Below are positions 1 to 62,666 of a stretch of DNA of 64,000 nucleotides, piece after piece. The stretch's first letter is position 1; every line of letters starts with the position of its first letter. This DNA is from Heteronotia binoei. Taxonomy: Eukaryota. The notes below the pieces were generated by a model. It was not told where the DNA came from and did no database searches. It worked only from the letters and a program-made list of their open reading frames with translations. Position numbers and translations under genes: made by a program. The DNA lies in the NCBI RefSeq assembly GCF_032191835.1, contig NC_083223.1, positions 247,752,001-247,816,000 of the forward strand. The letters run 5' to 3'.

Positions 1-637
1 TCATCTCAAATCCTCCCTCCAAGTTAATGAAGCATGTGAAGAGAAACAAAGTGACCCAGTCTCTTCAGAGCAGCAGGGGATTTTTTAGCCCCTCAGAGAT
101 CATCTGACAAGGTGCTTTGGTGGCCTACGGTCTCCACAGATGTGGCTGCTCTCCCAAGCATTACACTGCTGGAAGCTTTTGGCAGGAAAGTCCCTTGACG
201 CAAGCCTGGGAAACATTCTGCGCCTGCAGCAGAAGCAGATACTTCCTCCCTCCACTTTTAGATAGATGGCGATACTGTAGTTGCCAAATGACAATGGAAG
301 GCGCTCTGTGCATGCTCAGTGGCACTTTAATCTTTATGAGAATCATTTCTCCACACAGACCACTGAGATCTGGCCAAAAGGCCAACTAGATCTCATCTGT
401 TACCGGAGTCCCCCTTTCCTCTCCTCCAACATGAGATTAAGACCTGAGCTCTCTCCACCATGGCCCGACTTCTGCAGAACTCTGTCATCAGTGAAGTCCA
501 TAAGATCCCAACACTTTTAGCCTGTAGAAAAATGGATCAAACCTTCCTCTCTTGTTTGATAAACTCCCATGCTGGCAAGAGCCTTCTTATGAAAAGGCAA
601 AGGCCTGCCAATAGGGAGATGCAAATATACTTTCAGT

Positions 638-821
638 GGGGACTTTTTTTTTGTAGCAGGAACTCCTTTGCATATAAGGTCACACCTCCCTGGTGTAGCC
701 AATCCTCCAAGAGTTTACAGAACTCTCAGTACAGGACCTACTGTAAGCTCCAGGAGGATTGGCTACATCAGGGGTGTGTGGCCTAATATGCAAAGGAGTT
801 CCTGTTACAAAAAAAGCTCTG
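638..821. mobile_element. Fold-back non-autonomous hAT-type MITE (CAGGGCTTTTT-type termini)
   Basis: Near-perfect ~180-bp palindrome; 8-bp target duplication ctttcagt at 630-637 and 822-829. Further copies at 35105-35282 and 41028-41209, related ones at 13173-13280 and 20095-20229. Confidence 0.8.
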
Positions 822-1067
822 CTTTCAGTCCTGGGGCATTATGACCCAACCAGAGGCACTGACATTTTCAAGGAAGACTTGGAACACCAGGATGCTAGTC
901 CCAAGCCGGGATGGTACTTCTAACAGCAATTTCTAGCGCCATTTTTTTTTCCAGTCAGGACAGAGCAGGGGCCTGGAAGAGTTTCCCAACAGCAATCCAT
1001 CTCTACCCACAGCAGTCTGGGGCTGTATCCCAACCCCCTTCCCTGCCACACCCCTCTGCACCCTCAC

Positions 1068-1234
1068 CAGCTACAATGTACATGGTGTGTCCATCGTCAC
1101 CCTCAGCTACAATTGTGTCTCCAGGTTGGTGCTCCTCCAGGGTGAAGCTCTCCACCAGCGGATGGCTCTGCCCATCACCCAAGCATCGCAGGAATTCGTT
1201 GCGTTTCACAGCTTCCAAGATTAGGTTGGCATCC
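1068..1234 (-). CDS. cGMP-dependent protein kinase-like gene, exon encoding start of cyclic-nucleotide-binding domain A (167 nt); gene continues left of the window
   Basis: ccccag|G acceptor, G|gtgagg donor. Translates (R)DANLILEAVKRNEFLRCLGDGQSHPLVESFTLEEHQPGDTIVAEGDDGHTMYIVA, which aligns by eye with PKG1 SKDLIKEAILDNDFMKNL...IIKEGDVGSLVYVME and PKG2 KLITDALNKNQFLKRL...IIKQGEPGNHIFVLA. The 167-nt, phase 2 to phase 1 structure matches my recollection of the equivalent PRKG exon. Confidence 0.92.
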
Positions 1235-1427
1235 CTGGGGGAAGGGAGTAGAGAGATGCCAGATGGGGCTGCAACCCTCCCCTCCCTTCCCTTCCCTGAC
1301 CACCTGCCTCCTCAGACTCACAAGCAGGGAGCGGAGGTCCAACTTCCACTCCTTCCCCACCTCAAGCATCACATTGCTGCAAATTCTGGGAAGAGGCACC
1401 CCGCATAGGCACATGGAGCCTGGTTAC

Positions 1428-1572
1428 CTGGGGGATTTGGGGATACATGGCACCTGCCAGTTGCCATCAGTCATAAGGGGCTCAGGGACGATCCCCTGCT
1501 CCCTGCTGCCCCTCCTGTCTTCCTCCACAGGCGACTGATCCGGGGTGCCCCTGGCATGTTCCAGATTCCCAT
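1428..1572 (-). CDS. PKG-like gene, exon with autoinhibitory/pseudosubstrate segment (145 nt)
   Basis: cttcgttacag| acceptor, AG|gtaacc donor. Open frame (D)GNLEHARGTPDQSPVEEDRRGSREQGIVPEPLMTDGNWQVPCIPKSP(R). RRGSREQGIVPEP parallels PKG1alpha PRTTRAQGISAEP, and the phase-2 end joins the 1068-1234 exon in frame. Confidence 0.85.
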
Positions 1573-2429
1573 CTGTAACGAAGAAAGGGGAGACAGGCTG
1601 TCACCCACAACATTCTCCCCCTCCAGCTCCCATTCCTCCACTGTTTACCCAGGCAGGTCCCCATTCTCTTCTGTTTCCTTCCCTCCCCAGCCTCTTTTCC
1701 CAATAATCTAAGCTTTCCATGCAGGCCAAAGAGATCCACTGGACGGCAATTAAGTGCCCGTCCGTTCCTTGCTGGGTGAGGGGATAGGAATGTCGAGGGC
1801 CGACCTGTCCTGCCTGTCTGAAAGAGGAAAGGATGGCTGCATCTCCCCCCCCCCCTTCCCCGCACAGCTGGGAGAAGACCTGCGGGCGGGCGATGCTTTT
1901 GTAATTGGAAAAGATGCTGTTCCCTTCGGCTGATCCCCGGCAGACCCGTTATTTGAGGCTGCCTGAGCTGCTGATAAGGAAAAGCACTTTGGCTGAAACC
2001 TGTTGATCTGATGCTGAAGTCGTCTGAGCACAGCAACTCCAGGGCAAAAGGCTTCGGATTTGCTGCTGCCCGCAGAGGAGAGTCGAGAAGTGCGCCAGGC
2101 ACTTTGCAAAAGAACAGAATAAGCCAGGGTCTCTACTCAACGCAGTTGATCAGCCCCCAAAAGCTGAGCTATTAACTGGGTGGGCAGAAGAAGTCAGAGG
2201 TGAGACTGGTGGGATTGAGGTAAGGTTGGTGGGATTGCGGGGGGGGGGGGGGGGGAGAAGGGGGGCAGCCCCATCTGGCCCCTGTGAGGCTCAATCCACA
2301 AGGAACTTCTCTTGCATGAGAAGGAACGTCCCAGAAAATTGCCAGGGGGTTCTGGACTGGGAAGGGGAGATTTCCCACTCCATCTGGGTCGAAGCCTGCA
2401 AATGGAGCCTGCCTGAGTTTCTGTTTCAA

Positions 2430-3300
2430 CCTGTTGAGCTTCTCCCTCTGTGTCAGAGGCAGGAGGCGAAGCCCTTTCCCTGGACCAGAAAGCCCAGGCG
2501 GCCTCAGTCTGCTCCAAAACGCCTCTGCTCAGAAGCCCTCCACTTCCAGCCCAGCCCCAGGGCCGATCTCGCGGTCGGGTGCTCTTACCGGGCTCCGTGA
2601 GCGCGACGCTCTCCAGAAACTCCCTCTCCTCCTGGAGGCGCAACTCGCGCAGTCGGACATCCATCTCTCCTTCAGCGGCTCCGCTGTCTGGAGTAGGCGA
2701 GGTGCAGCCGCGAGCCTGGCTTGCCTTTAGAGGCTGCAGGAAGGAGGCGGGGGCGGGGGGGGGGAGGAGAGAGAGGGGGAGAGAAAAGTGCTCAGTAGTT
2801 CAAGGATCCCAGGATCCCCGCCAGCCAGCCGAGCCTCAGCAGCGCCGTCAAAAAGACAGATGCCACCCCAGCCTCTTCGCGCCTCTCCAACCCAAAGGCA
2901 GCCCAACCCGATGGCATCATCAGAGCCTCCAGGGCCAGCGGCTGAGCGCAGCAGCCCCAGCGCCTTCTTATCCCACGCAGCTCGGGAGCCCCTCGGTGTG
3001 TCCCCCCCCTCCCCTCCCCTGCTCTGCCCGGGCAGGTCCTCCGGCTGGCATCACCTGGGAGCCCGCCTCTGAACTACTGCTGCAAAGTACCGCCGGTCCT
3101 CTCTGGGCTCGGCGCGCCCGATCCAGCTGCTGCCTCCCGAGCCGAGGGGCTTGCTGGCAAGTGAGTCACCCCGGCTTCTGGGGGTAGGGGAGGGAGGGCA
3201 GGTGGGCGTGCCCACATCCCCGCAAGAGGCTTGGGCATGGCTGATGTTGAGCTCCCTGCCCTTGGCGCTCCACCGCCAAACATGATGCCAATGTGTTACT
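2430..3300. promoter_or_regulatory. CpG/GC-rich island at the 5' end of the PKG-like gene
   Basis: Visibly high CpG and GC density relative to the flanks; boundaries approximate. Confidence 0.55.
2589..2733 (-). CDS. PKG-like gene, probable upstream exon (145 nt; contains a possible start ATG at 2664)
   Basis: Long polypyrimidine tract + cctgcag| acceptor and strong G|gtaaga donor. Open frame PLKASQARGCTSPTPDSGAAEGEMDVRLRELRLQEEREFLESVALTEP. The phase-1 end is compatible with exon 1428-1572. No recognisable homology, so the support is splice-signal based. Confidence 0.6.
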
Positions 3301-5411
3301 AGGCAACCAGCCCTTCCAATGCATTTCAGTCACTCCGAGGATTTTCCCACAACAGGCATCAGCGTGGTGCATGGTGGTGGTGGTGGGGAAAGTATCCCCT
3401 GAGGGATAAAAACAATCAACGGGGCCTTTGGGGGCTGGAGGGGACCATCGGTCCTGGTCCCTGAGCATTGCCTGGGATTGGGGAGGTACGGGGGTGGGGG
3501 TGGGGAGGCTGGTGGATCAAACTCCATCCGCCTTTCAATGGCACATTCTTGAAATAAGAAGCCAGCTCCTGGGATGAGGGGGAGAGGGGCAGGTTAGACA
3601 GGCCAGAGCAAGACCCAGCTATTGAATTTCTTCTGCATTCAGCCAGGCTTGCTCTGAAAACATCCAGGCGCACAAACAAAGAAGCAAAAAAAAGGTCCCA
3701 AGGGATGCTCTGTTGGAGATAAAGCGGCACCTGTATTTGAATATATCTACATATTTTGCAGACTGCTTTATGCACCTCTCTGTCCTGTGGTACCTATTGT
3801 CCGCAAACAAAGAGAGCCAGCAATACCTTCAGGAGTGGGGAGGGCTGACTCCAAGTGAGGGCAAAAAAACCCTTCTCCAACCCCAGCCTCTGTTTTCAGC
3901 GCCTCAACTCAGCTTAGTTAAGGCAATCTAAAAATCTGGTCAAGGAAAACAAATAACACAAGGTGGCAGAAACACACAAGAAGACAGTGCCTCTGAGCAT
4001 GTGCAGAGGGACCTTTGCTTCCCCAATGAAGCACCGCAGCCAATTTCCATGGATTGAGGGTTGAGGGGGGTGGGATTTTCCAGTCTCATGAGCAGGGAGG
4101 TTTGGTTAAGCATTGGCACTTCCGGTTAGAAAATGAGCCCATGGGGTCAGACCAAATATCCAATTACTTCTGATTAGTCTTGGGCGATGCGTAAGCAACT
4201 CCCAGACAACTGAGCCTGCCTTTCCTGTCTCCTTGTAATTGTACAAGGAACTATTCTGGAGAAAATGCTCCCCTTTCTTTCTGGGCAATGCCAGGTCAGG
4301 ACGTTTTGCAGCTCCAGATGCCCTGACATCCGATCAGAGAGATGGATGCAACTTCAGGATCTTCTGCAACAGGATGAGGCATCTTCGCCAGCACCTTTTG
4401 GTCCATACCTGGCTGTCTCAAGGGTGCCCTAAGCAACTGCTTGGGTTGCTTGTACTGATGGGCTGACTGAGTGGTATGGAAGGCTTGACGCTTGTCACAT
4501 ACACATATCAATGATTTACATACCTGCAGTTTTGACACTTCAACACACCTAACCCTAAACTTTCAGGGTGGGGAAATCAAAATAAAAATCTGATAACATC
4601 CGTGCAGGTGAACAGAGCTGCATTCTGAAAATGCATGGTCAGATATCCTCCACCCAAAAGAGCAGGGCTGGAAAAGCTTTGTTCCCCCCATCTAAGGTGC
4701 ATGGTTGTAATGATCACACATACTCACAGATAGTCACAATGCCCTCTGCACTTGCTCTCGGTATTCTTCTGTCTAGTCCACATATTTCAGGGCTGAGCCC
4801 TGGCATCAAAGAGAAGTTGCAGGCTGAGTTTCCTCTCAAATTAAGCTCTGTACTCTCCCACAGATACACAGACATTCAGGAACTGTCGTGCCCATCTGCA
4901 ACATATACAAAAATGTAGCAGCACTGGCTAAAAAAAGACACAGAAGCAGCAAAGCGACACAGGGATACCCTAACATCTGCGCATAGCAATGTTCCTAGAT
5001 AACGGCATGGGAAAAACCCCAAGATTTCTCCATCATCATCTTCCGCTAGGAAATGGAATGCATGTGATCCAGATTCAAGACGTGGGTTGCAACATGCCTT
5101 CTCTGCACATCTGCATCCATTGAATTGGCAGATAAATTCCATGCACCCTCCTGCTGTGACTATCCCATCCTTAACTAGACACCCCCACAAATGCCTTGTC
5201 ATCCTCCCCTGAAGACCAACCTGTCCCTTGGAGAGTTCCATTTCAGCTCCCGGTGGAAACCCGGAGTCCTGTGAGTGCTGCTTGCCACGCCTTATCTGGC
5301 AGTTACACATTAATCCTGGTGCTGTGTGTTGTCCTCCTCCCAGCTGCCCTTCCCCCTCCAGCAGATGCATAGAATCATAGAAACGGACTCTATGTGTTCC
5401 CAGAGGCAATC

Positions 5412-5929
5412 TAGAATCATAGAGTTGGAAGGGACCTCTAGGGTCATCTAGTCCAACCCCCTGCACAATGCAGGAAACTCACAAACACCTCCTCCTAAAT
5501 TCACAGGATCTTCATTGCTGTCAGATAGCCATCCAACCTCTGTTTAAAAACCTCCAAGGAAGGAGAGCCCACCACCTCCCGAGGAAGCCTGTTCCACTGA
5601 GGAATCGCTCTAACAGTCAGGATGTTCTTCCTAATGTTGAGCCGGAAACTCTTTTGATTTAATTTCAACCCATTGGTTCTGCTCCTACCTTCTGGGGCCA
5701 CAGAAAACAATTCCACATCATCTTCTACATCAGGGGTGGCCAACAGTAGCTCTCCAGATGTTTTCTGCCTACAACTCCCATCAGCCCCAGCCATTGGCCA
5801 TGCTGGCTGGGGCTGATGGGAGTTGTAGGCAAAAACATCTGGAGAGCTAGCGTTGGCCACCTCTGCTCTACATGACAGCCCTTCAAGTACTTGAAGATGG
5901 TGATCATATCACCTCTCAGCTGCCTCCTC
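5412..5929 (-). mobile_element. CR1 LINE 3' fragment, interrupted by a MITE
   Basis: CR1 tail (tagaatcatagagttggaaggg = reverse of ATTCTATG repeats). Antisense ORF ...[44 protein letters not shown], typical of the CR1 ORF2 C-terminus. Confidence 0.9.
5731..5865. mobile_element. 135-bp hairpin hAT MITE (CAGGGGTGGCCAAC termini) nested in CR1
   Basis: Terminal inverted repeats and internal palindrome; TSD ttctacat/ctctacat. Absent from the otherwise matching CR1 copy at ~38780. Confidence 0.85.
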
Positions 5930-6704
5930 TTTGCATATTCCCAAATTTCTTACATATTCCAAAGCGACAGACACTGGAAATTAGCTTGCACATCAGGACT
6001 GAACCTCTAGGTTCAAAGCTAAATCTGCAGGCAAATAAAGACCTGGTTAAACTCCAGATTTCCTGTTCAGCTTGACCCACCACCTGCAGCTTAGAGACCA
6101 GTACCTGCCAAGCGGTACCCAAAAAATTCCTTGACTGATCTGCATGCCCTTTGATTTCCCCTCTTTAAACTGTCTGTTTTTACACTTCAGACTATAAGCC
6201 TTCAGGAGCAGTCTGTTTTACTGTCTAGCACCTAGCAACTGCAGGCCTTTTATAAAGAATAAATACATTTTGAAACAACAGCAATAATAATAATGCCACG
6301 AGGAACAAGGCAAGTCTGATTATACTCCAAGTGGTGTATCTGTGAAGCTTTGCTGTAGAAGAGACAGAGTGGCCGAGTGGACAGATTGGGAAGGCCCAGA
6401 TTTAAATCTATAAAACTGTTATACATACTGAATGGCTCTGGGGAGGTAGATGGTGGAACCATTAGATTCTGCCATGGTTTCCACCCCCAAGCACTGTTGT
6501 CCTTAGGGTCTGCCCCCAAATTTCCAGGAACTTCCCAGCCCTGTAGTTGGCAGTCCTAAGGTCCATACCATTTGCTCCAAGTTCCTTGGAGCAAGGATGA
6601 TGTGTGGCGCAAGGAGAGGATGTGTCCTCATGACACCCCCTGGTCTGTGGGGTTCCTCAAGGGGCACTCCTCTCCCCAATGTTGTTCAACATCTATTTGC
6701 GTCC

Positions 6705-7400
6705 CCTTGCCCAGCTGGCATGGAGTTTTGGGCTAGGGCATCATCAATATGCAGATGATAGCTGTATTTGCTGTTGGGCAACCCTTCCTCCTCGATCCCG
6801 TCATCTTTGGCTGTGGGTTTGGAGGCCCTAGTGGGCTGGCTGAAGCAGAATAGGCTGAAATTGAACCCAAAGACTGAAGTTCTGTGGCCGGGGGGGACCA
6901 GGGTTGGAGCAAGAGCGTCGATTGCCTGCTCTTGACAGGGCATCTTTAACACCGGCACCAACAGTCAAGAGCTTGGGAGTGACCCTGGATGCTTCTCTTT
7001 CAACGGAGGCCAGGTCACACATATGGCTAAAACAGCATTCTTTCATCTACGCCAAGCTAGGCAACTAGCTCCCCTCCTGCCTCGTACGTACCTAGCCATG
7101 GTAATCCATGCAATGGTCACCTCCAGGCTAGATTACTGTGACTCGCTCTACGCTGGCTACCCTTGACTTTAACCTGGAAACTCCAAAGGGTCCAGAATGC
7201 AGCAGTGCGAGTCCTGACAGGAACACCATGGACAGCACACATTCTACCTGTGCTGCGCCAGCTACACTGGCTTCCGGTTGAGTACCAAGTTAAGATTCAA
7301 GGTTTTGGTTATAACCTTTAAGGCCTTGAGCAGTCTGGGACTGACGTATCTATGGAACCGCCTCCTCCACTATGTCCCTGGAAGAGCACTACGCTCTTTA
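6705..7400 (+). mobile_element. Decayed L2-clade LINE reverse-transcriptase fragment
   Basis: HQYADD motif at ~6743-6760, then LVTSRLDYC and QLHWLPVEY motifs, in shifting frames. Confidence 0.8.
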
Positions 7401-7929
7401 GAGGTCCATCAGTGGCAATTAGCCACAGTGTGTGTGTGTGTATGGCCACTGTGTGACACAGAGTGTTGGACTGGATGGGCCATTGGCCTGATCCAACATG
7501 GCTTCTCTTATGTTCTTACTGTTCGAAATCTACTGGCGATCCCCAGCCCCTGGCTGTCCTCATCTCTGGTACGAGGCTTTGGAATGGTCTTCTCCTCTCC
7601 CCAATGACAGCAAGGACAGCAGGTCTAATTCAAAGCCGCCCACCCACCACAATTGCCTAGCATGAAGGCACAGTATTATTGCCCAATGTGGAAACTGAGG
7701 CACTGGGTATGGTGACTGTGAGTTGAAAGAGAGGACTGTTAATTATGAGTCACAACTATTAACAGGAAGTCAACAGCACCCTGAAAACCTGCTCTAGAAT
7801 GTATGCTTGTCCACGGAAGAACACTTTCGCTTTCCACCGCAAAACTCCAGGAACAACTGAGGCAAGTTTTGGGGTGCCCACAGATTCAGCCTTTCTACAG
7901 TATGAGACTGTAACGCTTCTTTGTTATTT

Positions 7930-9322
7930 CACTTATGGGTTCTGTAAAGGAAAATCTTGTCTCACTAACCTGTTAGAGTTCTTTGAGCGGGTGAAGAAAC
8001 ATGTGGGCAAGGGGGACCCAATAGATGTTGTTTACCGTAACTTCCAGAAAGCTTTTGATAAAGTTCCTCATCAAAGGCTCGTAAGTAAGCTCAATAGTCA
8101 TGAGGTAAAAGGACAAGTCCTCTTGTGGATCAAAAACTGGCTAATTAACAGGAAACAGAGAGTATGAATGGGCAATTTTCACAGTGGAGGGTGGTAAGCA
8201 GTGGGGTACAGCAGGGCTCAGTACTGGGTCCGATGCTTTTTAACTCGATTTGGAGTTGGGAGTAAGCAATGAAGTGGCTAAGTTTGCGGATAACACTACA
8301 TTGTTCAGAGTGGTGAGAACCAGAGAGGATTGTGAGGCACTCCAAAGGGATCTGTGGAGGCTGGGCGAGTGGGCATCAACATGGCAAATGAGGCTTAACC
8401 TGGCCAAGTGCAAAGTAATACACAAAATCCTGGCTATAAATACAAGTTGATAGGGTCTGAACTGGCAGAGACTGACCAAAAGAGAGATCTGATCAAGAGA
8501 GAATCATAGTATTTAACTCACTGAAAATGTCGAGCCAGCATGTGGCTGCAATTAAAAAGGCCAACACTATGCTGGGGATTATTAGGAAGAGAATTGAAAA
8601 CAAATCAGCCAGTATCATAATGCCCCTGTATATATTGATGGTGCAGCCTCATTTGCAGTACTGTGTACAATTCTGGTCACCACACCTCAGAAAAGATATT
8701 ATAGCATTGGAAAAGGTGCAGAAAAGGGCAACTAGAATGATTAAAGGGTTGGAACACTTTCCCTTTGAAGAAAGGTTAAAGCACTTGGGGCTCTTTAGCT
8801 TGGAGAAATGTCAACTGAGGGGTGACATGATTGGGGTTTACAAGATTATGCATGGGATAGAGAAGGTGGAGGAAAAAGTACTTTTCTCCCTTTCTCATAA
8901 TACAAGAACTCCTGGGCACTCCATGAAATTGCTGAGCAGTTGGATTAGAACAGATAAAAGGAAGTACCTACTTCTTCACCCAAAGGGTGATAAACACATG
9001 GAATTCACTGGAATGGAGTTCACTGCCATAGGAGGTGGTGGCAACTACATGCACAGATGGATTCAAGAGGGGATTGGATAAACATATGGGGCAGAGGTCC
9101 ATCCGTTGCTGTTACCCACAAGATATAGATGGAACTCTCTGACTGGGGCAAGTGATGCTCTGTATTCTTGGTGCTTGGGAGGGCTTCAAGTGTCCTGCCC
9201 CCACTGGTGGACCTTCTGATGGCACTGATTATTATTTTTTTTGCCACTGTGTGACACAGAGTGTTGGACTGGATGGGCCATTGGCCTGATCCAACATGGC
9301 TTCTCTTATATTCTTATGTTCT
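7930..9322 (+). mobile_element. 5'-truncated CR1 LINE (RT domain, C-terminus, 3' UTR), frameshifted
   Basis: ORFs 7799-8167 (GKSCLTNLLEFFE...DVVY.NFQKAFDKVPH), 8250-8450 (degenerate FADN) and 8527-9081 (PHLQYCVQFWSPHLRKD) are CR1 ORF2 pieces. Ends in the ggcctgatccaacatggcttctcttat(gttcttat) tail, which also occurs at ~7445-7520, 15537-15830 (-), 40570-40793 and 59130-59340. Confidence 0.9.
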
Positions 9323-10255
9323 TATCTATCTTCCTCAGTGAGACTCAAAGTGAATGACAAAATTATAAGAGAGTACAATAAAGACCTGCATAATACATAC
9401 AGCAAACAAAGGAAGAAAATTGGATAATACAATTAGAGAAAAGAGAAATAAAAACAGCATAAAGCATCCAATAAATTGGATCACATAATTAAAGAACAAT
9501 TAAATAAAGATGCCATAAAATAGCCAATAAAAAGGCAATTTAAGGCAGGAAGGGAACTGGGAGAATTTTTTAAAAAATATTTTATTCGACACTAAAAAGT
9601 AATTTTTTTTCTTCTAAAAGAAATTAAAACATTTCCAGAGGCCCCTAAAAGGATCATGGGCCCTAGCCTCCTAGGTGCCTACTGTGCTCCTCAGGCAAGC
9701 CATTCCACCAGAAAGGAGCCACCACAGAAATGAAGCTAGAGCTTAAATCCCAAAGAAAAGTCTAATCCTGCACAGAGAACAGTCTGGATGGAGAAAGAGG
9801 AGCCCATCTGCTTGTCAGACAGCCATTACCACAGGGAGATGAGTCACATGACAGCCCAGAGTCAGACTTTCCAAGGCCCTCAGTCTTCCCTGAGGCAATC
9901 TTGGAGCAACAGGACTCCGGCAGTTCTACTGTCCGCAAGCTGCAGATGTTGTTATGAGGGAAAGTGCAAGAAACTATTCAGTTCCCTTCTAGGGTTGCCT
10001 TGTCACCTCTGGCCACTGGTGGGGTGGAATGTGGGTAGTGTTGCCAAATCCAGGCTGGGAAACTCCTAGAGATTTGAGGATGGAGCCTGGGGAGGACAGG
10101 GACCTCAGTAGGGTACAATGCCACAGAGTCCACCCTCCAATGCATCCATTTTCTCCAGGGGAGCTGATCTCTGTAGTCTGGAGAAGAACTGTAATTCCAG
10201 GGGATCCTGGAGATGAGCTGTAATTCCACCCGGAGGCTGGTATCTCTATTTCTAC

Positions 10256-10296
<41 letters not shown>
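10256..10296. repeat. Compound (TG)n(GA)n microsatellite
   Basis: Directly visible dinucleotide runs. Confidence 0.95.
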
Positions 10297-11658
10297 AATA
10301 GAGAGTTATACATACACAATGTATATGTAAGTCTGTCTAAGATTCTGTTGGGGGTATGGGTTTAGTATCTTGTGAGCATAATTCTGCACATATTGTATAT
10401 TTTATAATTAAACAAAAACAGAGAACTGGTAAATGCAATGAATACACACTTCCCCCAGTTTCTTTCCACCTTTCCTTCCTCTGGCCTCCTTACAGCAAAT
10501 TTTAGATTGTAAATTGCATGGGGCAGAGTACTTTCTTCTAGCATGTTATCAAGCACCATGCACTAAGACAGCACTGTGTGAAAAATAAAAATAATTAAAT
10601 AAAACATAAAGCCATATACATTCACTATAAAGGAAAGAGTCGTTCATTGTTTTTTAGAATCTGTGTAATTTGTCTAGGGTTTTTTTGTGTAATTCCCCTT
10701 TAGACCAAGTGAGAAAGGCATAGAATATAAATAAAAATAAATAAGAATCTTACTTTGATACTCATGTTAATATTCTTGCTTAGTGCCCTTTTGGAAACAT
10801 AAGTTTTTCATTATCAGAACAGATGAAGAAAGTCTCAGAGAACATTTTGGATACTGGATTTTAAAAAATGGTTTTCAAAGTCTCTCTGCTCTTTACCTAT
10901 AACAAAGTGGGAAAGCTTATCCTCATATCTGCAGGAATGTCCATCTGCCTCTCTCCCTCTCCCACCCTATAAGCAAGGAGAAGGGGGTCTGGTTTACCAT
11001 TAAGGGAAGCAGTGTAGCATGCAGACAGAATCACCCCGTGGAGCACAATCTGCTGGGTAGCACTACTACCCGCATCCGGTTGAAATTACCAGGGATTTCA
11101 CAAGCCCACTTGTTCTAGTGATTCTTGTGCAGGAGAAACAGATTGTGACTTGTTAGTGTGTGTGTGTGTATGTGGTGTGTGCTCTTTGGATTTTCTGCCT
11201 CAAGTACCAAAACATCAATAGCTGACCTATATGCTTAAACACATGTGCATGCATGCATGCATTCATTCATGCACACATAATAAACACACCACGCGTCTAT
11301 TCCTCAGATCACAAGAGACCCCATGTTTGTCTCTTGAATCCTTTTTTATAGCCTAGATCAAAGCTCCGTTTCTTATGAAAAGTTAATTAAAAAAACCAAA
11401 CCAGCTGTTCCTTCACCCTTCCTCCCACATTCTTTCCCCAACCTGTCTCAGCTCAACCAACGTGATGACAGCTGGCAAACTTTATCAAACAGTCAGTGAG
11501 ACTTTGGCCCTTTCTCTCTCTCTCTCCCCACCCAACCAATGGCAAGTGCCATTTGTTTAAATGGGATCTGTGTGCCTCCTTGTGTAAATTACAGTGTGGA
11601 TGGGGCTGGGTGGGAACAGTTTTAGCCTCCACTTTGCTTTTGACATGTGGCCATTAAA

Positions 11659-11812
11659 GAAAAAGAAGAAGAACTGCAGATTTATACCCCACCCTTCTCC
11701 CTGAATCAGAGACTCAGAGCGGCTTACAATCTCCTATGTCTTCTCCCCTCACAACAAACACCCTGTGAGGTGGATGGGGCTGAGAGGGCTCTCACAGCAG
11801 CTGCCCTTTCAA
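11659..11812 (-). mobile_element. MIR/Ther1-derived squamate SINE (Squam3-like), 5'-truncated
   Basis: Reverse of the (CTT)n tail plus the 3' body shared with the full copies in this window. Confidence 0.75.
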
Positions 11813-13172
11813 TGTTATTGACTCACTGTATGTTTGTTGTTAAGTGCCAGTATCTCTGTGAGGATCTGTTTGAAGGATGATTGTAAGCCACTCTTTGGGT
11901 ACACAATATAAATATCAAATATTGTGAGGTTGGTTTTTAAAGTGTAGCATCTTGTGAGTACTGCTGTGCCCCTTTGTGTTTCAGCCATAACTTGATGGAG
12001 CCAGGACTAAAAACAATGAACAAAATGGTATTTGTTTTTATTTGTTTGTTTTATGGCCCACCTTTTGCACTGGGACTCAAGGACATTATACAGAATAGGT
12101 CAATATACAATCAGCAGGATGGAACATCCAATACACAGCACAACAGAATCTAACTTGTAGAAATCTAGGGCCAACCAGAAATCTGAAACTGAGGTGAATA
12201 AAAGAACAAAATGGGACTCCGACGATACCTTTAAGACCAACAAAGTTTTATTCAGGGTGTAACCTTTCATGTCAGACAATTAAGGTGAAGCAAAACATAG
12301 CATGAAACACTAAACAAAACAAAAAATTCAGAGTAGGAACTGATTTACAGCAGCAGATTATATGAACCTTACACAGTGGCGCTGGCACAGTCAATAATCT
12401 CTACCCCAAGTATATTTCTGAACCATTTTGTTACAACACGGCTCTATTTCATTATTATTGTTGTTAACATCAGTTGCATGTTGCAAATCCTCTTTTTGAA
12501 AACACTACCGGCATCATATAGAAATTTACAATATCACCAGATCAATGAAAATAAATTACATCTAACACATATTTATCCTCCCTCCTTCTGCCAAGGAATT
12601 CAAGGATGTATGTATATATAGTTCTTCCCTCCTCCAGTTTACCCTTGCAGCATCCTTGTGAGGGAAGGTAGGCTGAGAGAGAGAAAGGAGCCCAGGGTCA
12701 CCCAGCAAGTTCATGGCAGAACAAGGCCTCCCCATTTTCAGTACATCACTCTGGCTAATATGGCAAAAAGAGATTAATTCTGATCCAGACTTTTCATTCA
12801 TCCTACTAAAACAATTGATATTAGAATTATGAAAGGCACCACACTGCTCCTGCAAAGAAAAGTACTTTGCTGATTATAAGTGCAGAAATTAAGGTCTGGA
12901 AATCTAGACAGGATTGTCAAGGCCCTTTGACAGCTATAAAAGTTGACTGTTGCAACCATCTAATGTGATACTGGAGAGGGTTTAAAGCCTGGGTGTCAAA
13001 TGCTTCTCTTGTACCAAAACATCTATGGTTGGAAAAAAAATAAACTTATCATTCCAGTGTTGTGTTATAAACCATAACATTTTTTTTTCTGCATACAGCC
13101 CTTGACATTTTCATTACAGCAGCCATGTTGGGTAGGCGCATTGTTTCAATTTCAAAGAAGAAGTAGAGAGAG

Positions 13173-38480: not shown

Positions 38481-39111
38481 AATCGTAGAGTTGGAAGGGA
38501 CCTCTAGGGTCATCTAGTCCAACCCCCTGCACAATGCAGGAAACTCACAAACACCTCTCCTCTAAATTCACAGGATCTTCATTGCTGTCAGATGGCCATC
38601 TAGCCTCTGTTTAAAAACCTCCAAGGAAGGAGAGCCCACCACCTCACGAGGAACCCTGTTCCACTGAGGAATCGCTCTGTCAGGAAGTTCTTCCTAATGT
38701 TGAGTCGGAAACTCTTTTGATTTAATTTCAACCCGCTGGTTCTGGTCCTACCTTCCGGGGCCACAGAAAACAATTCCACACCATCCTCTATATGACAGCC
38801 CTTCAAGTGCTTGAAGATGGCGATCATATCACCTCTCAGCTGTCTCCTCTCCAGGATAAACATCCCCAGCTCCTTCAGCCTTTCCTCATAGGACTTGGTC
38901 TCCAGACCCCTCACCATCTTCGTTGCCCTCCTCTGGACTCGTTCCAGCTTGTCTATATCCTTAAAATGTGGTGCCCAAAACTGAACATGATATTGCAGGT
39001 GAGGTCTTACCAGAGCAGAGTAAAGCGATACCATCACATCACGTGATCTGGACACTATACTTCCGTTGATACAGCCCAAAATTGCATTTGCCTTTTTAGC
39101 CACCACATCAC
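38481..39111 (-). mobile_element. CR1 LINE 3' fragment inserted into a SINE (SINE halves ~38295-38480 and ~39226-39275)
   Basis: Antisense ORF 38600-39106 ([33 protein letters not shown]...) is CR1 ORF2; the SINE resumes on the far side. Confidence 0.9.
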
Positions 39112-43130: not shown

Positions 43131-43505
43131 TCAGTTTCCAGGAACAGGAGGCATCTCAGCCCCTTGTCCCTGAGTGTCCAGCGATGCTTCCTGGCCAGGA
43201 TCCCCTTTATGCATTGGTGTTCCAGGGCTCAGTGAAGGGGCCTCCATCACTCCCTGCTCCTGAAAAGTCTCTGGGGCAGCCGGGGGTTCTGATGTACCGT
43301 GCTGGACTGGGAGGTCTGAGAGCCCAACACTTTGTCCGTCTGGCTCTGGAGGGGCCCATAACACTGCCCCATCTTCTCCACTGGGGGCAGCAAGCAGTAC
43401 TGGGGCCTGATCCTGCCAGGGGCCCAGAAACAGCTCGGAGGGATCCAGCAACCCATCCTGGTTCAAGTCCTGTGTCTCCAGGATGCTGTCCACCATCAGC
43501 ACCAG
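43131..43505 (-). CDS. CGREF1: CGREF1 last coding exon (375 nt, EF-hand 2 and Pro/Glu-rich tail); total CDS 723 nt = 240 aa
   Basis: LVLMVDSILETQDLNQDGLLDPSEL...PPVPGN*; ttctgcag| acceptor; EF loop DLNQDGLLDPSE. Confidence 0.93.
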   Translation of the reverse strand: MVLMVDSILETQDLNQDGLLDPSELFLGPWQDQAPVLLAAPSGEDGAVLWAPPEPDGQSVGLSDLPVQHGTSEPPAAPETFQEQGVMEAPSLSPGTPMHKGDPGQEASLDTQGQGAEMPPVPGN

Positions 43506-44839
43506 CTGCAGAAGTGGAAGAAGAGATGAAGTCAACACTTTCATTAGTAACAAAAAAACACCCATGGTCACTGTTTCCCCCACTCCGCGGAGCTTTAATC
43601 CTTTATTTGATTGCTTTAGTCTTATTAAAATAATAGAATTAAACTATGCCTAACAGATACCTTGGGTGCCTTCTAAGTATACCCAACTCTGCCCTTTTAA
43701 GAAGAAAACTGTGGCAACCAGCCTTTGAGGCTAAAGGGAGGCAAGAGAGAATACTTGTTCTGGTGGCCTAGGGTTGCCAGCTTCCTAGTGGGGTCTAGAG
43801 ATTTTCTGATTCCTCTGGTGAAAAATTACAGCTTTGGAAAGTGGACTCTATGACGTACCTCTCTGAGGGAGATCTTAGTGGAGCCCAAGATCCTTACACT
43901 TCTTGACTGAGGGCTGATTCATATATGCCCCAAGAATGAGAAGAAAAAGCCCTGAGTCAGTAGAGGCGACTGTTCCACTTGAGACTGCAGATGGATTTGA
44001 ATGTGTCTTCAGATGGAAGGAAAACCATGAGAATTAGTCCAGCAGGGAGAAAGGCTCAGCCCTCTTGCCATTTGCTTGCAGTGCTGGTTTTCTGCTTGCC
44101 AGTTTTTAAAACAAAGGGAAACATGCTAAATTGTAATCTTCTACCTGCAGTCTGAAGTGGTGCAGTCCACATTGCATGTCTGCTCCAGGGCACATTGTAG
44201 CTATCCTGAAACTCAAGGGAGTTTCACGAGAAAAATGAAACAGCAGGAACAGGAGATGAAAGATTTTAAGCAATTAGAGCTTTGTTAGGGGACTGTCACA
44301 AAAATATGTAGTTAGTAAAACTATGCTGAAGTCACATGAAATCAGAAAAAAATAATAAACACTGTGTTCTTGAATTATTTTTATGTAGCAAATTTTTATT
44401 GCACACAAATGCAGTATAGTATAATGACTTACGTATTTTGTTTTGTGATTGATGAAGACCTACTAGTTTGAAAAAGCTGCTTTGTCATAGCTGCTTCCTT
44501 GGTACCTCCTAACATTTTGTGTAACCTTTTAACATTTTGTGATTGACCTGGGACAGCCATTTTGTGATTGGCCTCAATCCCCATGATAGCTGTTTTGCCA
44601 TTGGTTCCAACTCCATGGCAACCATTTTGTTGTGGTGGCCACTGCCTGTTCTTCCAGACTGCTCACAGGTTCCCCTGCTCGAGAGTCAAGTTATGACAGC
44701 CAAGAGTGGCAGCCTCAGGGTAACAAGAAATGAGATCCAGAGGTTACCTCCTAACAAAGGAGGCAACAACCTAGGACAAGATGGCAGAGAGTGTCTTTCT
44801 CCTGGCAGAGGTACCAAGGACGAATAAAACAGCACTTAC

Positions 44840-54111: not shown

Positions 54112-54620
54112 TAGGGTTGCCAAGTCCAATTCAAGAAATATCTGGGGACTTTGGGGTGGAGCCAGGATACATTGGGGGTGGAGCCAGGAACCAGGGTGTG
54201 ACAAGCATAATTGAACTCCAAAGGGAGTTCTGGCCCTCACATTTAAAGGGACCACACACCTTTTAAATGCTTTCCCTCCATTGGAAATAATGAAGGATAA
54301 GGACACCTTCTTTTGGGGCTCATAGAACTGGACACCCTGGCCCAATCTTTTTGATACTTGGAGGGTGTTTTGAGGAGAGGCACCGGATGCTATGCTGCAA
54401 ATCTGGTGCATCTACCTCAAAAGTAGCCCCCCCCCTCGAGCCCCAGATACCCACGGATCAATTCTCCATTATACCCTATGGGAATTGGTCTCCATAGGGA
54501 ATAACGGCGTGCCCAGCAGACATTCTCCTCCCTCCTCCCGCTTTCTGTTGACCCTGAAGTGGGGGGAGGGACTCCAAAACCGGGGGATCCCCTGCCCCCA
54601 CCTGGGGATTGGCAACCCTA
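54112..54620. mobile_element. 509-bp non-autonomous hAT element, inverted relative to 16270-16760
   Basis: TIRs tagggttgcca/tggcaacccta; perfect TSD acctgggc at 54104-54111 and 54621-54628. Confidence 0.9.
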
Positions 54621-54629
54621 ACCTGGGCT

Positions 54630-55110
54630 GACATCAACGCCTTCTCTCGTTTTGGCTCTGCCCCTCCAGCCGCAATGAGTGGCAGGCGGAGGCTGCACGG
54701 TGCCCGTCACAAAGATGGCCGCGGGCGGGCGGGGTTTCGCGCCGGCCCATCCCCAAGAGGGCGGTCCAGCTGGGGAAGTGGGCGGTGCTTGCTCCTTCCG
54801 GCAGCGGCGGAGTTCGCTGCTCGCTGCGGGGTTGGCTGGTTTGGCGGCCGAGGGGCTGCGCGGAAGATGCTGGGGCTGTCGCTGTTGGTGGGCTTCAGCA
54901 CCGGGTTGCTCGCCTATTATTGGGCTCGCGTCCCCAAGGTCAGCGCTGCCGCCTCTTCGAGCGCCCTGGACGGGCTGGGCAGGCGGGAGGAAGCCGGCAA
55001 GTTCTCCTTCTCCGGCAACCAGGAGGTTGGAGGACGGGTGGAAAGGGCTCTTCTGCCCCGGAGCCTGTCCGGCTGTTGCCAACAAGCTCCCGCCGGTGGG
55101 AAACGAGGCG
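54630..55110 (+). promoter_or_regulatory. ABHD1: ABHD1 CpG island / promoter
   Basis: CpG-rich; YY1-like AAGATGGCCG (~54712-54721) and GC boxes. Confidence 0.65.
54867..54938 (+). CDS. ABHD1: ABHD1 exon 1 CDS (72 nt from ATG 54867; an in-frame upstream ATG exists at 54675)
   Basis: MLGLSLLVGFSTGLLAYYWARVPK, a hydrophobic anchor with the YYW motif; AAG|gtcagc. Confidence 0.82.
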
Positions 55111-55357
55111 TGTGGCTCAGCTTTTATTACTCTCTGTTGCTTCTGCTTCCTGTGCTTCATTGCTCCTTGGTGCGACTGAGCATGTACAGAGTGCCTTCCT
55201 CTAGTTCCTGACAAACGACAACCGTTTATGCCTACCATTTCAGAGATAGGGAGCTTTCCAAGGGCGAAGGCGGGGTGGGTGGGGGTTAGACAGACCAGAG
55301 GTTGCGGAGCTTTCACTTTTAAAGAGACTGAACTCTGACCGCCTCTTTCCTCTAGAT

Positions 55358-55648
55358 CAAGGGTGGGGAGCCACATGTGGCTTTCACACATATTGTGTGG
55401 CTCTCGAACCCCCACCGCCCTGTCAGCCAGCTTGGAGAAGGCATTTGTCTCTTTAAATCACTTCTCCAAGCCAGCTAGTGGCTTGGATAATGTATTTAAA
55501 GTTGCTTTCTTTCCACCTCTCCCCCCAATCTATTTGCCTGCCTTCCTATCTTGCAGCTCTCAAACACCTAATGTTCATGTCTTGCAGCTCTCGAACATCT
55601 GACATTTATTCTTTTGGCTCTTACATTAAGCAAGTTTGGCCACCCCTG
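55358..55648. mobile_element. hAT MITE (CAGGGGTGG-type TIR) at a TCTAGA-centred target
   Basis: caagggtgggg.../...ggccacccctg; flanks ctctagat and gtctagac. Confidence 0.7.
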
Positions 55649-57797
55649 GTCTAGACTCACTTCCTTGGTGGGAATATTGAGGTCAGGCTTGGCATGCTTG
55701 CGGAGGGGGGGGGGCGCTACTCATCTCCCCATCTGTTGGCTCATCCGGCTGCTTGTGCCAGCTCCTTTCTCCTCCTGTGACTGTCTTTGGGATGCCCAGT
55801 GGTTAATTATTTTAAATGGTGGGGCTTTCCAGAGAAGTTTGAAATTCTGTCTTGCCCTGTCCCAGATGTTTTCACAGGGTAGCCGTATTGGTCTCCAGTA
55901 AAACAGTTTGATTTGAGTCCTTGGAGATGAACAAGAGTTTCAGGGTAGAAGCTTCCGAGAGTCAAAGCTTCCTTTGTCAGATGTGGGGGTTTTTTTCTTG
56001 TGAAAGGGAAAAGATGCTTGGTACATACTGGGATATAGTCTTCCTTTTATTGTCACATGTTTAAGGCTAATCCCTGCTGCAGAATACAAATCTTGTAGCT
56101 GGGTGTCTGATTGTAGTTATTAGGTATGGAAACCAACACCCTATTTCTCACCTCCCACCACTGGCTGCTCCAGTGTGTTTCTCTTAGGTCACTTTCCTTC
56201 TGTGCCTTTCCATACAGATATTGTTTTTCAGTCCCCTCTAGAATACACACCTTCCTCTACCTTAATGCCTCCCTGTAACTACACCCTGCCCATGAAACAA
56301 ACAAACAAACCATAAAGCAGAGGGTGTTTCAATATAAACACCTTTGCACTGGAGTCAGGACAGGTGTGCGTGGGTCAGGAAGCGCGTGCTTCTAAGGGCA
56401 GCTGACCCACTTCACCAATACTTGTTTCCACTGTGTAGTCTCTGCTAGTATTCCTCCAAACAAAGATGCCTACTTCGGGGGGTGTCCCATGAGAAGACAT
56501 AAGGAGAAGAGCACACACATAGTGCAGTTCCTGCGTTTTGCGGGGGATTTGCTTCAGTTCTTGACTGGGGCTTTTTGTTATATGTTGGGTTCTAAGAATC
56601 TGAGAACTGTGTATTGGATGGATCAAGTGAAAAATCAGGCTCATATATTCCCTTGGAAACGGCTTCGCTGGGGGAGACCCAGGTTCAAACCTTTTCTCAA
56701 CTGTAAAGCTTGCTGGATGACCTTAGGCCAGGCCCGTAGGTACAGGGGGGCCAGGCCCATTCTTTCAACCTCCCTTTCCATCTGCATAGCCCCTTTGCTC
56801 ACCACCACTCTGAACAAGTAGTAGCATTGCACATAAGAAGGGGTGGGGAGTGGAGCTGCTGCAACTGCCCAGGTGAAGGGGTTGTGGAGCTCAAGGCAGC
56901 TTACAGTGCCGAGAGCCTAGGGCTGCCAAACTGGGTGGCCTCCTGGCCCCCTCAAACAACAAATTCTGCTGTGGGCCCCACCAAACATGGAATCTTGGCT
57001 ACGGCCCTGCCTTAGGCCAGTTACCGCCATAATCTCTCTCCACATCATCTGCCTCAAAGGGTTGTTGTGAGTTGAAATGGAGAAGAAGGCGGCACTACCT
57101 TTGGGACTACCTCTCCCCATATGAGCCCTGCAGGGCTTTATGATCAGCGACTGTTCCTCTTAGTGGTACCCAGCCCCAAAGATGTCCAATTTGCCTCAAC
57201 TAGGGCCAGGGCCTTTTCGGTGGAATGATCTCCCCTTGTAGATTCAGGCCCTGCAGGACCTACTGCAAGCCCACAGGGCCTGTAAAACAGCTGTTCCACC
57301 AGGCCTTCAGTTGAGGTGGTGGACGTCACCCGTTATTGGCCTCACCCTCCCAATCTAGTGCTGGAGGACCTGACGGACTTGGATCAATAAGCCATGCCTG
57401 TTGAGGCTGAATCTGTTACTTTTAGCTTCTGTAATTTTAGCTCTTTATATAATTTTAATCTGGTTTTGTTTGGCTGCCTGATTTTATGCTATAACCCGCC
57501 CTGAACCTGTTTTATGGGAAGGGCAGGCTATAAGCCCAATAAAATAAATAAATAAAGAGAAGAACTTTCCTGCACTGGAACTCACCTTATCAGATACACA
57601 ACTCTTTTTTAAAATGACTTGGGTCCTTGGGATGCCGAACGAGGGGTCTACATCTTGAAAAAGTGCCATCTTGTCTGCCAGTCAATTGGTTGCCTGTGGG
57701 TGTTGGGCAGAACCACAGAAGCAGTGGTCGTCTGCTGCACCCTTGCCAAAAAACCCACAAAAACTGTTAGCCTGCTTGCTTGTGCACACAACAGTTG

Positions 57798-57999
57798 TAG
57801 TGCTCCCTCTAAACTTTGGAACCTTGTGAGCAAAAATTATCCTTTGTGAGCTACTTTGAAGTTGTGAGTGAGCGATTTGTCTTCTGCATAAATTAGTTTG
57901 CTCTGGGGTCATCCTTCCTGAGCTAAGACAAAAATGTGTGAGCTGGAAGCTAAAAAACAGTGAGCTAGCTCATACTAACTCAGCTCAGAGGGAACACTG
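57798..57999. mobile_element. hAT-like MITE (CAGTGTTCCCTCT termini); related copies ~45698-45890 and ~50960-51168
   Basis: Terminal inverted repeats and three dispersed copies. Confidence 0.7.
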
Positions 58000-58203
58000 A
58001 CTGACTATGAGTAGTCATTTGCAGCATATAGACAGCAGCATATAGAAAAGAGAGACTCCTGCCTGGTTGTTTCACAACACCTATTACTCACCCCAGGCAA
58101 GTTACTTACAGATCTCCAGTTATGCTGTTTCCTGCAAGGAGGCCTGTGGGTGTGGGTGGATCATCTGGAACTGAATCTGGGCTGGCCTTTCCCCCATATA
58201 CAG

Positions 58204-58364
58204 CGCCCCCTGCTGGTGGCTTGTCAGCCATTCCGTTCCTTCCTGGAGAAGTACTGTCCCATTGTGGATGAGACGTTCTATCCTACACCGTGGTGCTTTG
58301 AGGGCCGACTCCAGACCATTGTTCGTGTCTTCCTCAAGTCACGCCCACAGGTCCACTACCGCAG
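58204..58364 (+). CDS. ABHD1: ABHD1 exon 2 (161 nt)
   Basis: [53 protein letters not shown]; cag| and |gtagga. Confidence 0.95.
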
Positions 58365-58679
58365 GTAGGACTGGGGAAGAATACTGGGAATGTCTCGGGG
58401 GCAATTATTCTTCTGTAGGCTGCATGAGCAGCTGTTTGCAACTGCTTAGGCAGGTGAGCACCGAGTTTTGATCCCTTGCATCCTATTAATCTATCCTAGG
58501 CCCCTGGGGCACAATATCTTGTTTTCTAGTCCATCTAACCTCGGCATAGAGTAGAGGTCACTGGAGGAGAGGTAGCTGAAAATTTCCAGTGTTGTGTAGG
58601 GGGTTGGACTAGATGACCCTTGAGATCCTTTCCAGCTCTGTTTCCACCCTATCTCTTTGTCCCTTCATTTCCCATTTAG

Positions 58680-58865
58680 CGAGGTGCTGCGAACTGAAGA
58701 TGGAGGGCAACTGTTGCTGGATTGGGCCAACGATGAAGACAGGAATACAGGCCACCCTGACCCAGAGAGCTGCCCTATTGTCTTATTCCTGCCAGGCCTG
58801 ACAGGAAACAGTGAAGAGACCTACATCCTGCACATGGTGTGCACAGTCCAGCTACAGGGCTACAG
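58680..58865 (+). CDS. ABHD1: ABHD1 exon 3 (186 nt)
   Basis: [15 protein letters not shown]...[22 protein letters not shown]...GYR; ttag| and |gtgaga. Confidence 0.95.
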
Positions 58866-59492
58866 GTGAGAAAGCTTCATTAGGTCGTCTGTGCCAGTTT
58901 CCACAACTGTGAAGTAGGCATAAAGAACTGGTTATGGAGCAGCTTTCTCTTGCCGTGTGTAAATTTTGAATAGTCCCCTCATACCTCTGTGACCTGTCTA
59001 CTGGAAGAATGGCCTCTTCTGACAAGAACCTATGCACTCACCTCAGGTTTAATCACTTAGAGAATGATTAAAACGTGGAATTTGGTGTCTGAGGATGTAG
59101 TGATGGCCATAGTAATAGATTAACAGTGAATAGGTCTATCAGTGGCTAGTAGCCATGGTGACTAAGGGGAACCTCCACATTCAGAGGCAGTAAACCTCTG
59201 AATCCCAGAGCCAGGAGGCAACATCAGGGGAAGTGCCCCATTGTTGGCTGTCCAGGGGAACTGGTTGGCCACTATGTGAGACAGGATGCTGCACTAGATG
59301 GGCCACTGGTCTGATCCAGCAGGGCTCTTCTGATGTTCTTAATCTGCTTCAGTTGGAGCCATTCCTCCAGCCACCACCCAGTCTTGCCCCTTGATGACAG
59401 GCACTCCAATTTTCTAAAATGCTTCTTTGATGGGTATTAAGTGGCAGATCATGTCTGCGGAGATTATAAGAGGCTGGCTACTGGCATTTGAA

Positions 59493-59782
59493 GGCAGCCC
59501 CATGGCGCAGAGTAGCTAAGCTGCAGTATTGCAGTCTCAGCTCTCTGCTTACGACCTGAGTTCAATCCCAGGGGAAGCTCGGTTCAGGTAGCCGGCTCGA
59601 GGTTGACTCAGCCTTCCATCCTTAAATGAGTACTCAGTTTGCTGGGGGCGGGGGGGAAGTGTAGATGACTAGGGAAGGCAATGACAAACCACCCTGTAAA
59701 AGTCTGCCATGAAAATGTCATGATGCGACGTCACCTGAATAGGAAACAAATGGTGCTTGCACAGGAGATTACCTTTACTTTT
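59493..59782 (+). mobile_element. Sauria SINE, full length
   Basis: tRNA-like head, ACCTTT tail; TSD tactggcattt at 59479-59489 and 59783-59793. Confidence 0.87.
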
Positions 59783-60181
59783 TACTGGCATTTTAAAACC
59801 CAAAAGTTCACAGAAATGTAATTTCTAGCTTTGGCTGGCTTTGTATGGGGCCTGGTGTCATAATAAAATATTTCAACTTGTGGGGCAGAGCTTCCTTGCC
59901 AACTTGGGCCAAATGGCTATGTTTAGAAGATGGTCTGAAGGCAAAGGCTGGCAAGAGTGATGGATGGTGAGGTAAAGTTGCCAGCTCTGGGTAAGGAAAT
60001 CCTAGAGATTTTTCTGGGGGGACTGATCTCTTTGTCTGGAGATCAGTTGTAGTAATGGGAGGTTTCCAGGCCCCACCTGGTGGTTGGCAACCTTTGGCTG
60101 AAGCCTCTTGTACGAGGCAGCGTCAGGGTGGAGGGTGATGATCCTGCCAGTCAGCTCAACTTCCTTCTCTTTTCCTTCCAG

Positions 60182-60227
60182 GGCGGTTGTGTTCAATAAC
60201 AGAGGTTGCAAAGGAGAGGAATTGCTG
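60182..60227 (+). CDS. ABHD1: ABHD1 exon 4 (46 nt)
   Basis: AVVFNNRGCKGEELL; ttccag| and |gtgcgt. Confidence 0.95.
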
Positions 60228-60450
60228 GTGCGTACTAGTCTGGCCCATACCTGTGTTCCCCTTTTGCCTGTCTTTTGCCGGGTATGATGGATGTTTGCAG
60301 TGACAGTGCAGAGATGCTTATCATGCCCCTTCCAGACTGGGCACGTTGCTTCTCTCTGCAGAAGGGGGTGACTTTTCATCCATTCTCTGCCGTTTGGCTG
60401 AAGGCTCCCAGTATGGTTTCCAGGCCTTCATGCCTGCTTCTCTCCCTCAG

Positions 60451-62617: not shown

Positions 62618-62666
62618 GCACAGAAAGGTGGTTGCTGAGAAACTGGATGTGGATCATGTGCTGAAG
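62618..62666 (+). CDS. ABHD1: ABHD1 exon 7 (49 nt)
   Basis: HRKVVAEKLDVDHVLK; ttccag| and |gtacca. Confidence 0.93.

Follow-up and report, generated by a model that had tools for sequence, protein, structure and literature searches.

At the left end of a 64,000-nucleotide (nt) stretch of the Heteronotia binoei genome (contig NC_083223.1, positions 247,752,001 to 247,816,000; hereafter the window) lie three minus-strand coding exons, which very probably form the 5′ end (residues 1-129 of 666) of an intact gene for a third type of cyclic GMP (cGMP)-dependent protein kinase (PKG), belonging to a vertebrate-wide clade at the KHK-EMILIN1 locus. We call this kinase PKG3, a label of this report; its RefSeq name is ‘cGMP-dependent protein kinase 2-like’. 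The remainder of the window contains KHK (ketohexokinase), a CGREF1-like gene, and an ABHD1-like gene (Table 1). A preliminary description of the window had read the three exons as the beginning of a third PKG paralogue, intact and by eye at about the same distance from PKG1 as from PKG2, standing head-to-head with KHK, kept in squamates, lost in mammals, and representing a largely uncharacterised PKG branch of nitric oxide/natriuretic-peptide-cGMP signalling. The gene is already annotated in RefSeq for H. binoei and for dozens of other genomes, and is thus a re-discovery rather than a new gene.

All borders of the three coding exons (76 + 145 + 167 nt) are canonical GT-AG, the frame is preserved across both joints, with GAT (D) and AGG (R) as junction codons, and the window sequence contains zero N. 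The start codon at 2664 stands in a good context (gagATGg) on an exon whose first base, 2733, is directly preceded on the minus strand by the acceptor cctgcag and whose donor after 2589 is gtaag; exon 2 has the acceptor cgttacag and the donor gtaac, and exon 3 the acceptor cccccag and the donor gtgag. Exon 1 encodes MDVRLRELRLQEEREFLESVALTEP (residues 1-25, a short heptad-like N-terminus) and the first base of codon 26, exon 2 encodes GNLEHARGTPDQSPVEEDRRGSREQGIVPEPLMTDGNWQVPCIPKSP, a linker with an RRGS site followed by the autoinhibitory, pseudosubstrate-like REQGIVPEP, and exon 3 encodes DANLILEAVKRNEFLRCLGDGQSHPLVESFTLEEHQPGDTIVAEGDDGHTMYIVA. When these peptides were searched separately, exon by exon, exon 1 had zero matches in Pfam and exon 2 matched neither in Pfam nor in PDB, while exon 3 gave a weak Pfam cNMP_binding match (E 0.036) and PDB matches to the cyclic nucleotide-binding (cNMP) domains of PKG and of the regulatory subunits of cAMP-dependent protein kinase (PKA). 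The splice borders bear out the in-frame minus-strand gene of the preliminary description, and its order of a PKG-type autoinhibitory segment followed by the start of cNMP-binding domain A is recovered from the alignment register for exon 2 and from Pfam and PDB for exon 3.

Table 1. Features of the window, with positions counted from its first letter.
Feature	Position	Strand	Evidence or remark
Exon with start codon	2733-2589	-	5′ untranslated region 2733-2665, coding 2664-2589; sequence, splice sites, RNA contig piece exactly 2589-2733
Intron, 1016 nt, GT..AG	1573-2588	-	RNA joint 1572/2589, contigs of 3/3 runs
Exon 2, residues 26-74	1428-1572	-	Translation, RNA contig pieces
Intron, 193 nt, GT..AG	1235-1427	-	RNA joint 1233/1427, 3/3 runs
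Exon 3, residues 74-129, start of cNMP-binding domain A	1068-1234	-	Translation, Pfam, PDB, RNA contig pieces
First 1067 nt of the following intron	1-1067	-	Next exon ~1.63 kb past the left end of the window
KHK (ketohexokinase)	25552 (ATG), last coding exon to ~40199	+	Open reading frames, Pfam PfkB, PDB ketohexokinase 5e-33, collinear with eagle KHK
CGREF1-like gene	43131-43583	-	Follows KHK, order as in eagle
ABHD1-like gene	54600-63300	+	Follows the CGREF1-like gene, order as in eagle

XP_060106997.1 (RefSeq ‘cGMP-dependent protein kinase 2-like isoform X1’, H. binoei, 666 residues) matches the three exon peptides with 100% identity over its residues 1-25, 27-73, and 75-129, and both this match and the alignment to PKGs are far beyond chance. 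An exhaustive representative search with exon 3 returned short near-identical fragments together with full-length proteins that are 38-45% identical in exon 3. Positions 1-12664 of the window are 100% identical, in reverse orientation, to contig CM063325.1 of GCA_032191835.1, on which all 666 residues of XP_060106997.1 map as ~20 coding segments over 38 kb. The tblastn search of this protein on a piece of the gecko contig (L001, where window position p equals 12665 minus the L001 position) placed the next exon at L001 14296-14412. Leftward extension of the gene therefore recovered the second cNMP domain and the kinase domain on the same contig, and the intactness claimed by the preliminary description holds for the full model: two stretches of Pfam cNMP_binding (E 1e-44) are followed by Pkinase at residues 362-615 (E 3e-68), the catalytic and cGMP-pocket motifs are present, and only the 5′ part of the gene lies inside the window, as had been noted.

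Analysis of the protein pointed to a PKG-type organization throughout. The best PDB match of XP_060106997.1 is human PKG I-beta (E 1e-146, residues 63-666 aligned). Residues 45-57, RRGSREQGIVPEP, encoded by exon 2, line up with the autoinhibitory segments of PKG I alpha (RAQGISAEP), PKG I beta (RQAISAEP), and PKG II (AKAGVSAEP), so that this segment is pseudosubstrate-like with a predicted inhibitory role, and the Ser of the RRGS site aligns with a Thr-rich site just upstream of the PKG I alpha pseudosubstrate. The two phosphate-binding cassettes, FGELAVLYKCQRTAT and HFGELALIRNIRRTAS, have the RTA[T/S] signature and are kept in 113/113 and 97/113 orthologue models, respectively; cassettes of this type are those of cGMP-binding PKGs, and cGMP selectivity is thus predicted for the gecko protein, which also conserves an Arg at the position of the beta-5 Arg in domain B of PKG I. 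The catalytic motifs GTGGFG, FALK, YRDLKPEN, DFGFA, KTYSFCGTPEY, and APEI are all present, and the C-terminal tail is PKG-type (...FSGWDEDF). Among the orthologue models, IVPEP, both cassettes, GTGGFG, FALK, YRDLKPEN, DFGFA, KTYSFCGTPEY, and GWDEDF are each retained in 85-113 of 113. The clade also has traits of its own, namely an activation loop with KTYSF instead of KTWTF, an insert of ~12 residues ahead of the glycine loop, and a variable N-terminus: this is long and heptad-like in fish PKG3, whereas ~20 residues are left in sauropsids, where the pseudosubstrate ends at residue 44-81, compared with 66-84 in PRKG1 and 129 in PRKG2. Pfam PKcGMP_CC (PF16808), present in PRKG1 (P0446), was found in neither gecko nor fugu PKG3.

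By homology with PKG I and PKG II, the pseudosubstrate would block the catalytic cleft when cGMP is absent, and binding of cGMP to domains A and B would release it and so activate Ser/Thr phosphorylation. The coupling to nitric oxide or natriuretic peptides put forward in the preliminary description is likewise a prediction.

Transcription was assessed from RNA contigs of three runs (X1-X3) of a single study, recorded as metatranscriptomic, compared with positions 1-4000 of the window. Single contigs span 1068-1233, 1427-1572, and 2589-2733, with intron ends CT..AC on the plus strand. The junctions predicted by the preliminary description (2589/1572 and 1428/1234) both occur in contigs of all three runs, where the joints skip 1016 and 193 nt, as predicted. 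The contigs further extend 16-114 nt 3′ past 1068, into the next exon outside the window, and 147-178 nt 5′ of 2733. Because of this 5′ extension, at least one more upstream, non-coding exon must be present; the contig layout gave no placement for it within positions 1-4000, and this first exon, beyond 4000, may sit much nearer the KHK promoter. Compared with the window, the RNA carries ~1% substitutions and, in all three runs, 15 extra nt between 1547 and 1546 in exon 2, equal to five in-frame codons. The indel and the substitutions indicate that the RNA comes from another allele, lineage, or close species. Other gecko orthologues likewise have five additional residues at this site, and the assembly therefore carries an in-frame deletion or a polymorphic allele there.

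To place the protein among PKGs, canonical PRKG2 sequences of the same or related species were retrieved with a bichir PRKG2 seed (Hemicordylus, Zootoca, the gecko Sphaerodactylus, Alligator, Dromaius, Polypterus, Megalops, and others), and a 400-residue PRKG2 fragment served to retrieve canonical PRKG1 together with the PKGs of invertebrates; trees were built with 74 rows and, with bootstraps, with 31 rows, the latter also serving for approximately unbiased (AU) tests. Identity of the gecko protein is 41% with PRKG1 and 38-39% with PRKG2, close to the equal distance estimated by eye; between PRKG1 and PRKG2 themselves it is 53%. PKG3 and its hagfish relative form a clade with support 100/100 and a long stem in the 31-row tree (100* in the 74-row tree), separate from PRKG1 with invertebrate PKGs (99/98) and from PRKG2 (98/97). 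Branching within PKG3 equals the species tree, and the nearest row to the gecko protein is that of a Paroedura gecko (89%). PRKG1 and PRKG2 are joined to the exclusion of PKG3 with support 89/92. The AU test rejected a grouping of PKG3 with the vertebrate PRKG1 clade that excludes invertebrate PKGs (p 0.013) but did not reject a grouping of PKG3 with PRKG2 as its sister (p 0.122). In its deep placement, PKG3 may accordingly be read in two ways, as an old lineage or as a fast-evolving duplicate partner of PRKG2. Gecko and fugu PKG3 are 50% identical, whereas a single 90%-identity PRKG1 cluster spans shark, teleost, frog, bird, and mammal, from which it follows that PKG3 evolves much faster than PRKG1. 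The trees uphold the proposal of a third paralogue, since the protein, with fish sequences included, falls inside neither PRKG1 nor PRKG2.

Two further observations concern PRKG2-like proteins. The frog proteins P0427 (Dendropsophus) and P0456 (Engystomops), 688 residues long and named ‘cGMP-dependent protein kinase 2-like’, are sister to all canonical PRKG2 (98/97) and exist beside canonical frog PRKG2 (Ascaphus, Bombina); this branch may be a fourth vertebrate PKG lineage. Polypterus senegalus has a second PRKG2-like protein (P0059), 70% identical to its canonical PRKG2 (P0235).

Comparison with known kinases gives a similar picture. Gecko PKG3 is a single polypeptide similar in length to PRKG1 (666 vs. 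671/686 residues) and shares with it an N-terminal helical segment, an autoinhibitory segment with ...EP at its end, a pair of cNMP domains whose cassettes are of the RTA type, the beta-5 Arg of domain B, an AGC kinase domain, and the ...SGWD.DF tail, but differs in its lack of PKcGMP_CC, its much shorter sauropsid N-terminus, and its locus. With PRKG2 it shares the domain order and the catalytic and cGMP-pocket motifs, but it has no long myristoylated N-terminus of the MGNGS... kind and is ~100 residues shorter (the PRKG2 group measures ~760-785 residues). The PKA regulatory subunits (RI/RII) likewise place an inhibitor-site segment ahead of tandem cNMP domains, the RRxS right before the inhibitory segment of PKG3 resembles the substrate-type site of RII, and with exon 3 alone matches to PKA regulatory subunits are about as good as matches to PKGs. 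PKG3 differs from these subunits in having a kinase domain on the same chain and RTA cassettes, of the cGMP type; the cassettes of PKA regulatory subunits are RAA.

The taxonomic spread of PKG3 is broad. The best 120 relatives found with a turtle protein come from turtles, crocodilians, many birds, many squamates, caecilians, salamanders, lungfish, bichir, sturgeon, gar, and teleosts, under inconsistent names (‘1-like’, ‘2-like’, ‘1’, ‘2’), and a hagfish orthologue is called ‘Protein kinase cGMP-dependent 3’ in UniRef. No mammal occurs among these best 120 relatives of one search, which reach teleosts at 45-50% identity. The suggestion that the gene was kept in squamates and lost in mammals thus agrees with both observations, but not as a squamate-restricted retention, as most sampled non-mammalian vertebrates keep the gene. 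A goose model (Anser cygnoides, P0008) fuses a CGREF1-like N-terminus to PKG3; this is probably an error of annotation, the bird locus being very compact.

The neighbourhood is conserved as well. In the golden eagle the order is PREB-ABHD1-CGREF1-KHK-PKG3-EMILIN1-OST4, from calls at the eagle locus of a WD40 (PREB-like) gene, an ABHD1-like gene, a 361-residue gene, PfkB (KHK), the kinase, an EMI-collagen-C1q gene (EMILIN1), and OST4, and by tblastx the window is collinear with it for ABHD1, CGREF1, KHK, and the kinase gene. In gecko the EMILIN1 side lies beyond the window and beyond the 10-kb flank of the contig piece, and the KHK-EMILIN1 placement comes from the eagle. Fugu shares the neighbourhood in part, with the kinase gene between an ABHD-like gene and a K2P channel gene. 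The window is a conserved block of the region corresponding to human 2p23.3, which has the same gene order with KHK directly adjoining EMILIN1, an adjacency that fits loss of PKG3 in mammals. Eagle and gecko agree in the divergent orientation of KHK and the kinase gene, so the head-to-head arrangement of the preliminary description stands for orientation but not for close adjacency: the distance between the genes is 1.4 kb in eagle, and in gecko 22.9 kb separate the two ATGs.

Three other explanations of the exons were weighed against an intact PKG3 gene. The inconsistent RefSeq names within the clade, together with PKG I-beta as the best solved-structure match, would suit a gecko orthologue of PRKG1 or PRKG2 that carries a misleading automatic name. 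This is most unlikely, since it is refuted by the separate 100/100 clade and by the canonical PRKG2 that occurs beside PKG3 in the same species (e.g., Hemicordylus, Alligator, Dromaius, Polypterus, and Megalops). The protein lies outside PRKG1 by its tree position, its 41% identity, the AU test (p 0.013), and its lack of PF16808, and outside the 98/97 PRKG2 clade with 38-39% identity and no PKG II-type MGNGS N-terminus; such identities contrast with a canonical PRKG1 that stays within one 90%-identity cluster from shark to mammal, and the KHK-EMILIN1 locus is a further distinction. A decaying or truncated gene, either a pseudogene or a source of a regulatory-subunit-like product lacking the kinase domain, could be suspected from the 5′ part alone being in the window, from clade models that are truncated or frame-shifted (e.g., turtle isoforms P0009 and P0012), and from others named ‘cAMP-dependent protein kinase regulatory subunit-like’. 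We consider it very unlikely given that the entire 666-residue model maps on the gecko contig, that the spliced transcript runs into the next exon, that catalytic motifs are intact in gecko and most orthologues, and that gene and species trees agree, with branches of moderate length across >400 million years.

The preliminary description had seen the gene in a squamate alone, and sauropsid sequences are fast-evolving and GC-biased (composition warnings, 74-row tree), as might be expected if a recent squamate- or sauropsid-specific PKG duplicate had landed beside KHK. That such a duplication took place is next to inconceivable: it is refuted by the presence of the gene in amphibians, lungfish, bichir, sturgeon, gar, teleosts, and hagfish, the neighbourhood is common to eagle and partly to fugu, and the AU test rejects the grouping with vertebrate PRKG1 to the exclusion of invertebrate PKGs. 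Several points nevertheless weigh against an intact, mammal-lost third PKG as we describe it. Just 129 of the 666 residues are inside the window, the remainder being taken from the public contig and the RefSeq model. As for transcription, the evidence amounts to contigs of three runs that all belong to one study and stem from an animal or allele unlike the assembly, and these contigs demonstrate splicing only, the level and tissue of expression being outside their reach. Selectivity for cGMP over cAMP and kinase activity are predictions, and lacking PKcGMP_CC and with a very short sauropsid N-terminus, the kinase may depart from PKG I and PKG II in its dimerisation. The position of the clade relative to PRKG1 and PRKG2 hangs on a long stem (0.99 changes per site), and the apparent gene loss in mammals is deduced from absence among the best 120 hits of one search.

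The finding of PKG3 bears on a cGMP-signalling field that, after mammals, takes PKG I and PKG II as the full vertebrate set: most other vertebrates have a third intact, expressed PKG with its own N-terminus, faster evolution, and a conserved place between KHK and EMILIN1. It is relevant to how cGMP pharmacology and the phenotypes of knock-outs are read in zebrafish, chicken, or reptile models: there, an additional kinase could make up for a lost one or be active in, for example, the gut. Annotation is affected too: the names now in use (‘1-like’, ‘2-like’, ‘1’, ‘2’) lack consistency and mislead. The view of this PKG branch as largely uncharacterised fits the literature searched, in which we found zero studies of this third gene, with the qualification that databases annotate it. 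A zebrafish review lists prkg1a, prkg1b, prkg1l, and prkg2; a literature match on ‘prkg1l’ proved to be a text-string coincidence only. In a more speculative picture, PKG3 would be no vertebrate-specific PRKG1 copy but a third PKG lineage, deep-rooted and fast-evolving (either an ancient sister to the two known types or the long-lost duplicate partner of PRKG2), that was lost in mammals and serves as a major cGMP kinase of the sauropsid gut (enterocytes), divergent from KHK and possibly co-regulated with it. The leads for gut function and co-regulation are the 1.4 kb spacing in eagle and the origin of the gecko transcript from metatranscriptomic libraries, and taken as a whole we regard this picture as rather unlikely.

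Repeats are found in and around the gene. Open reading frames with a C-terminal reverse-transcriptase motif of the LINE (long interspersed nuclear element)/CR1 type lie between the kinase gene and KHK (4876-5860, minus strand, and 7799-9081, plus strand) and within a KHK intron (38600-39106, minus strand), and such insertions explain much of why the gap is so much wider in gecko (22.9 kb from ATG to ATG) than in eagle (1.4 kb from gene to gene). In the intron past exon 3, a hairpin repeat resembling a short interspersed nuclear element (~640-840) yields mirror-image open reading frames from its two arms. Here the summed RNA-contig depth rises to ~2.8e5, with many odd joints; this is a highly expressed repeat family, separate from the gene.

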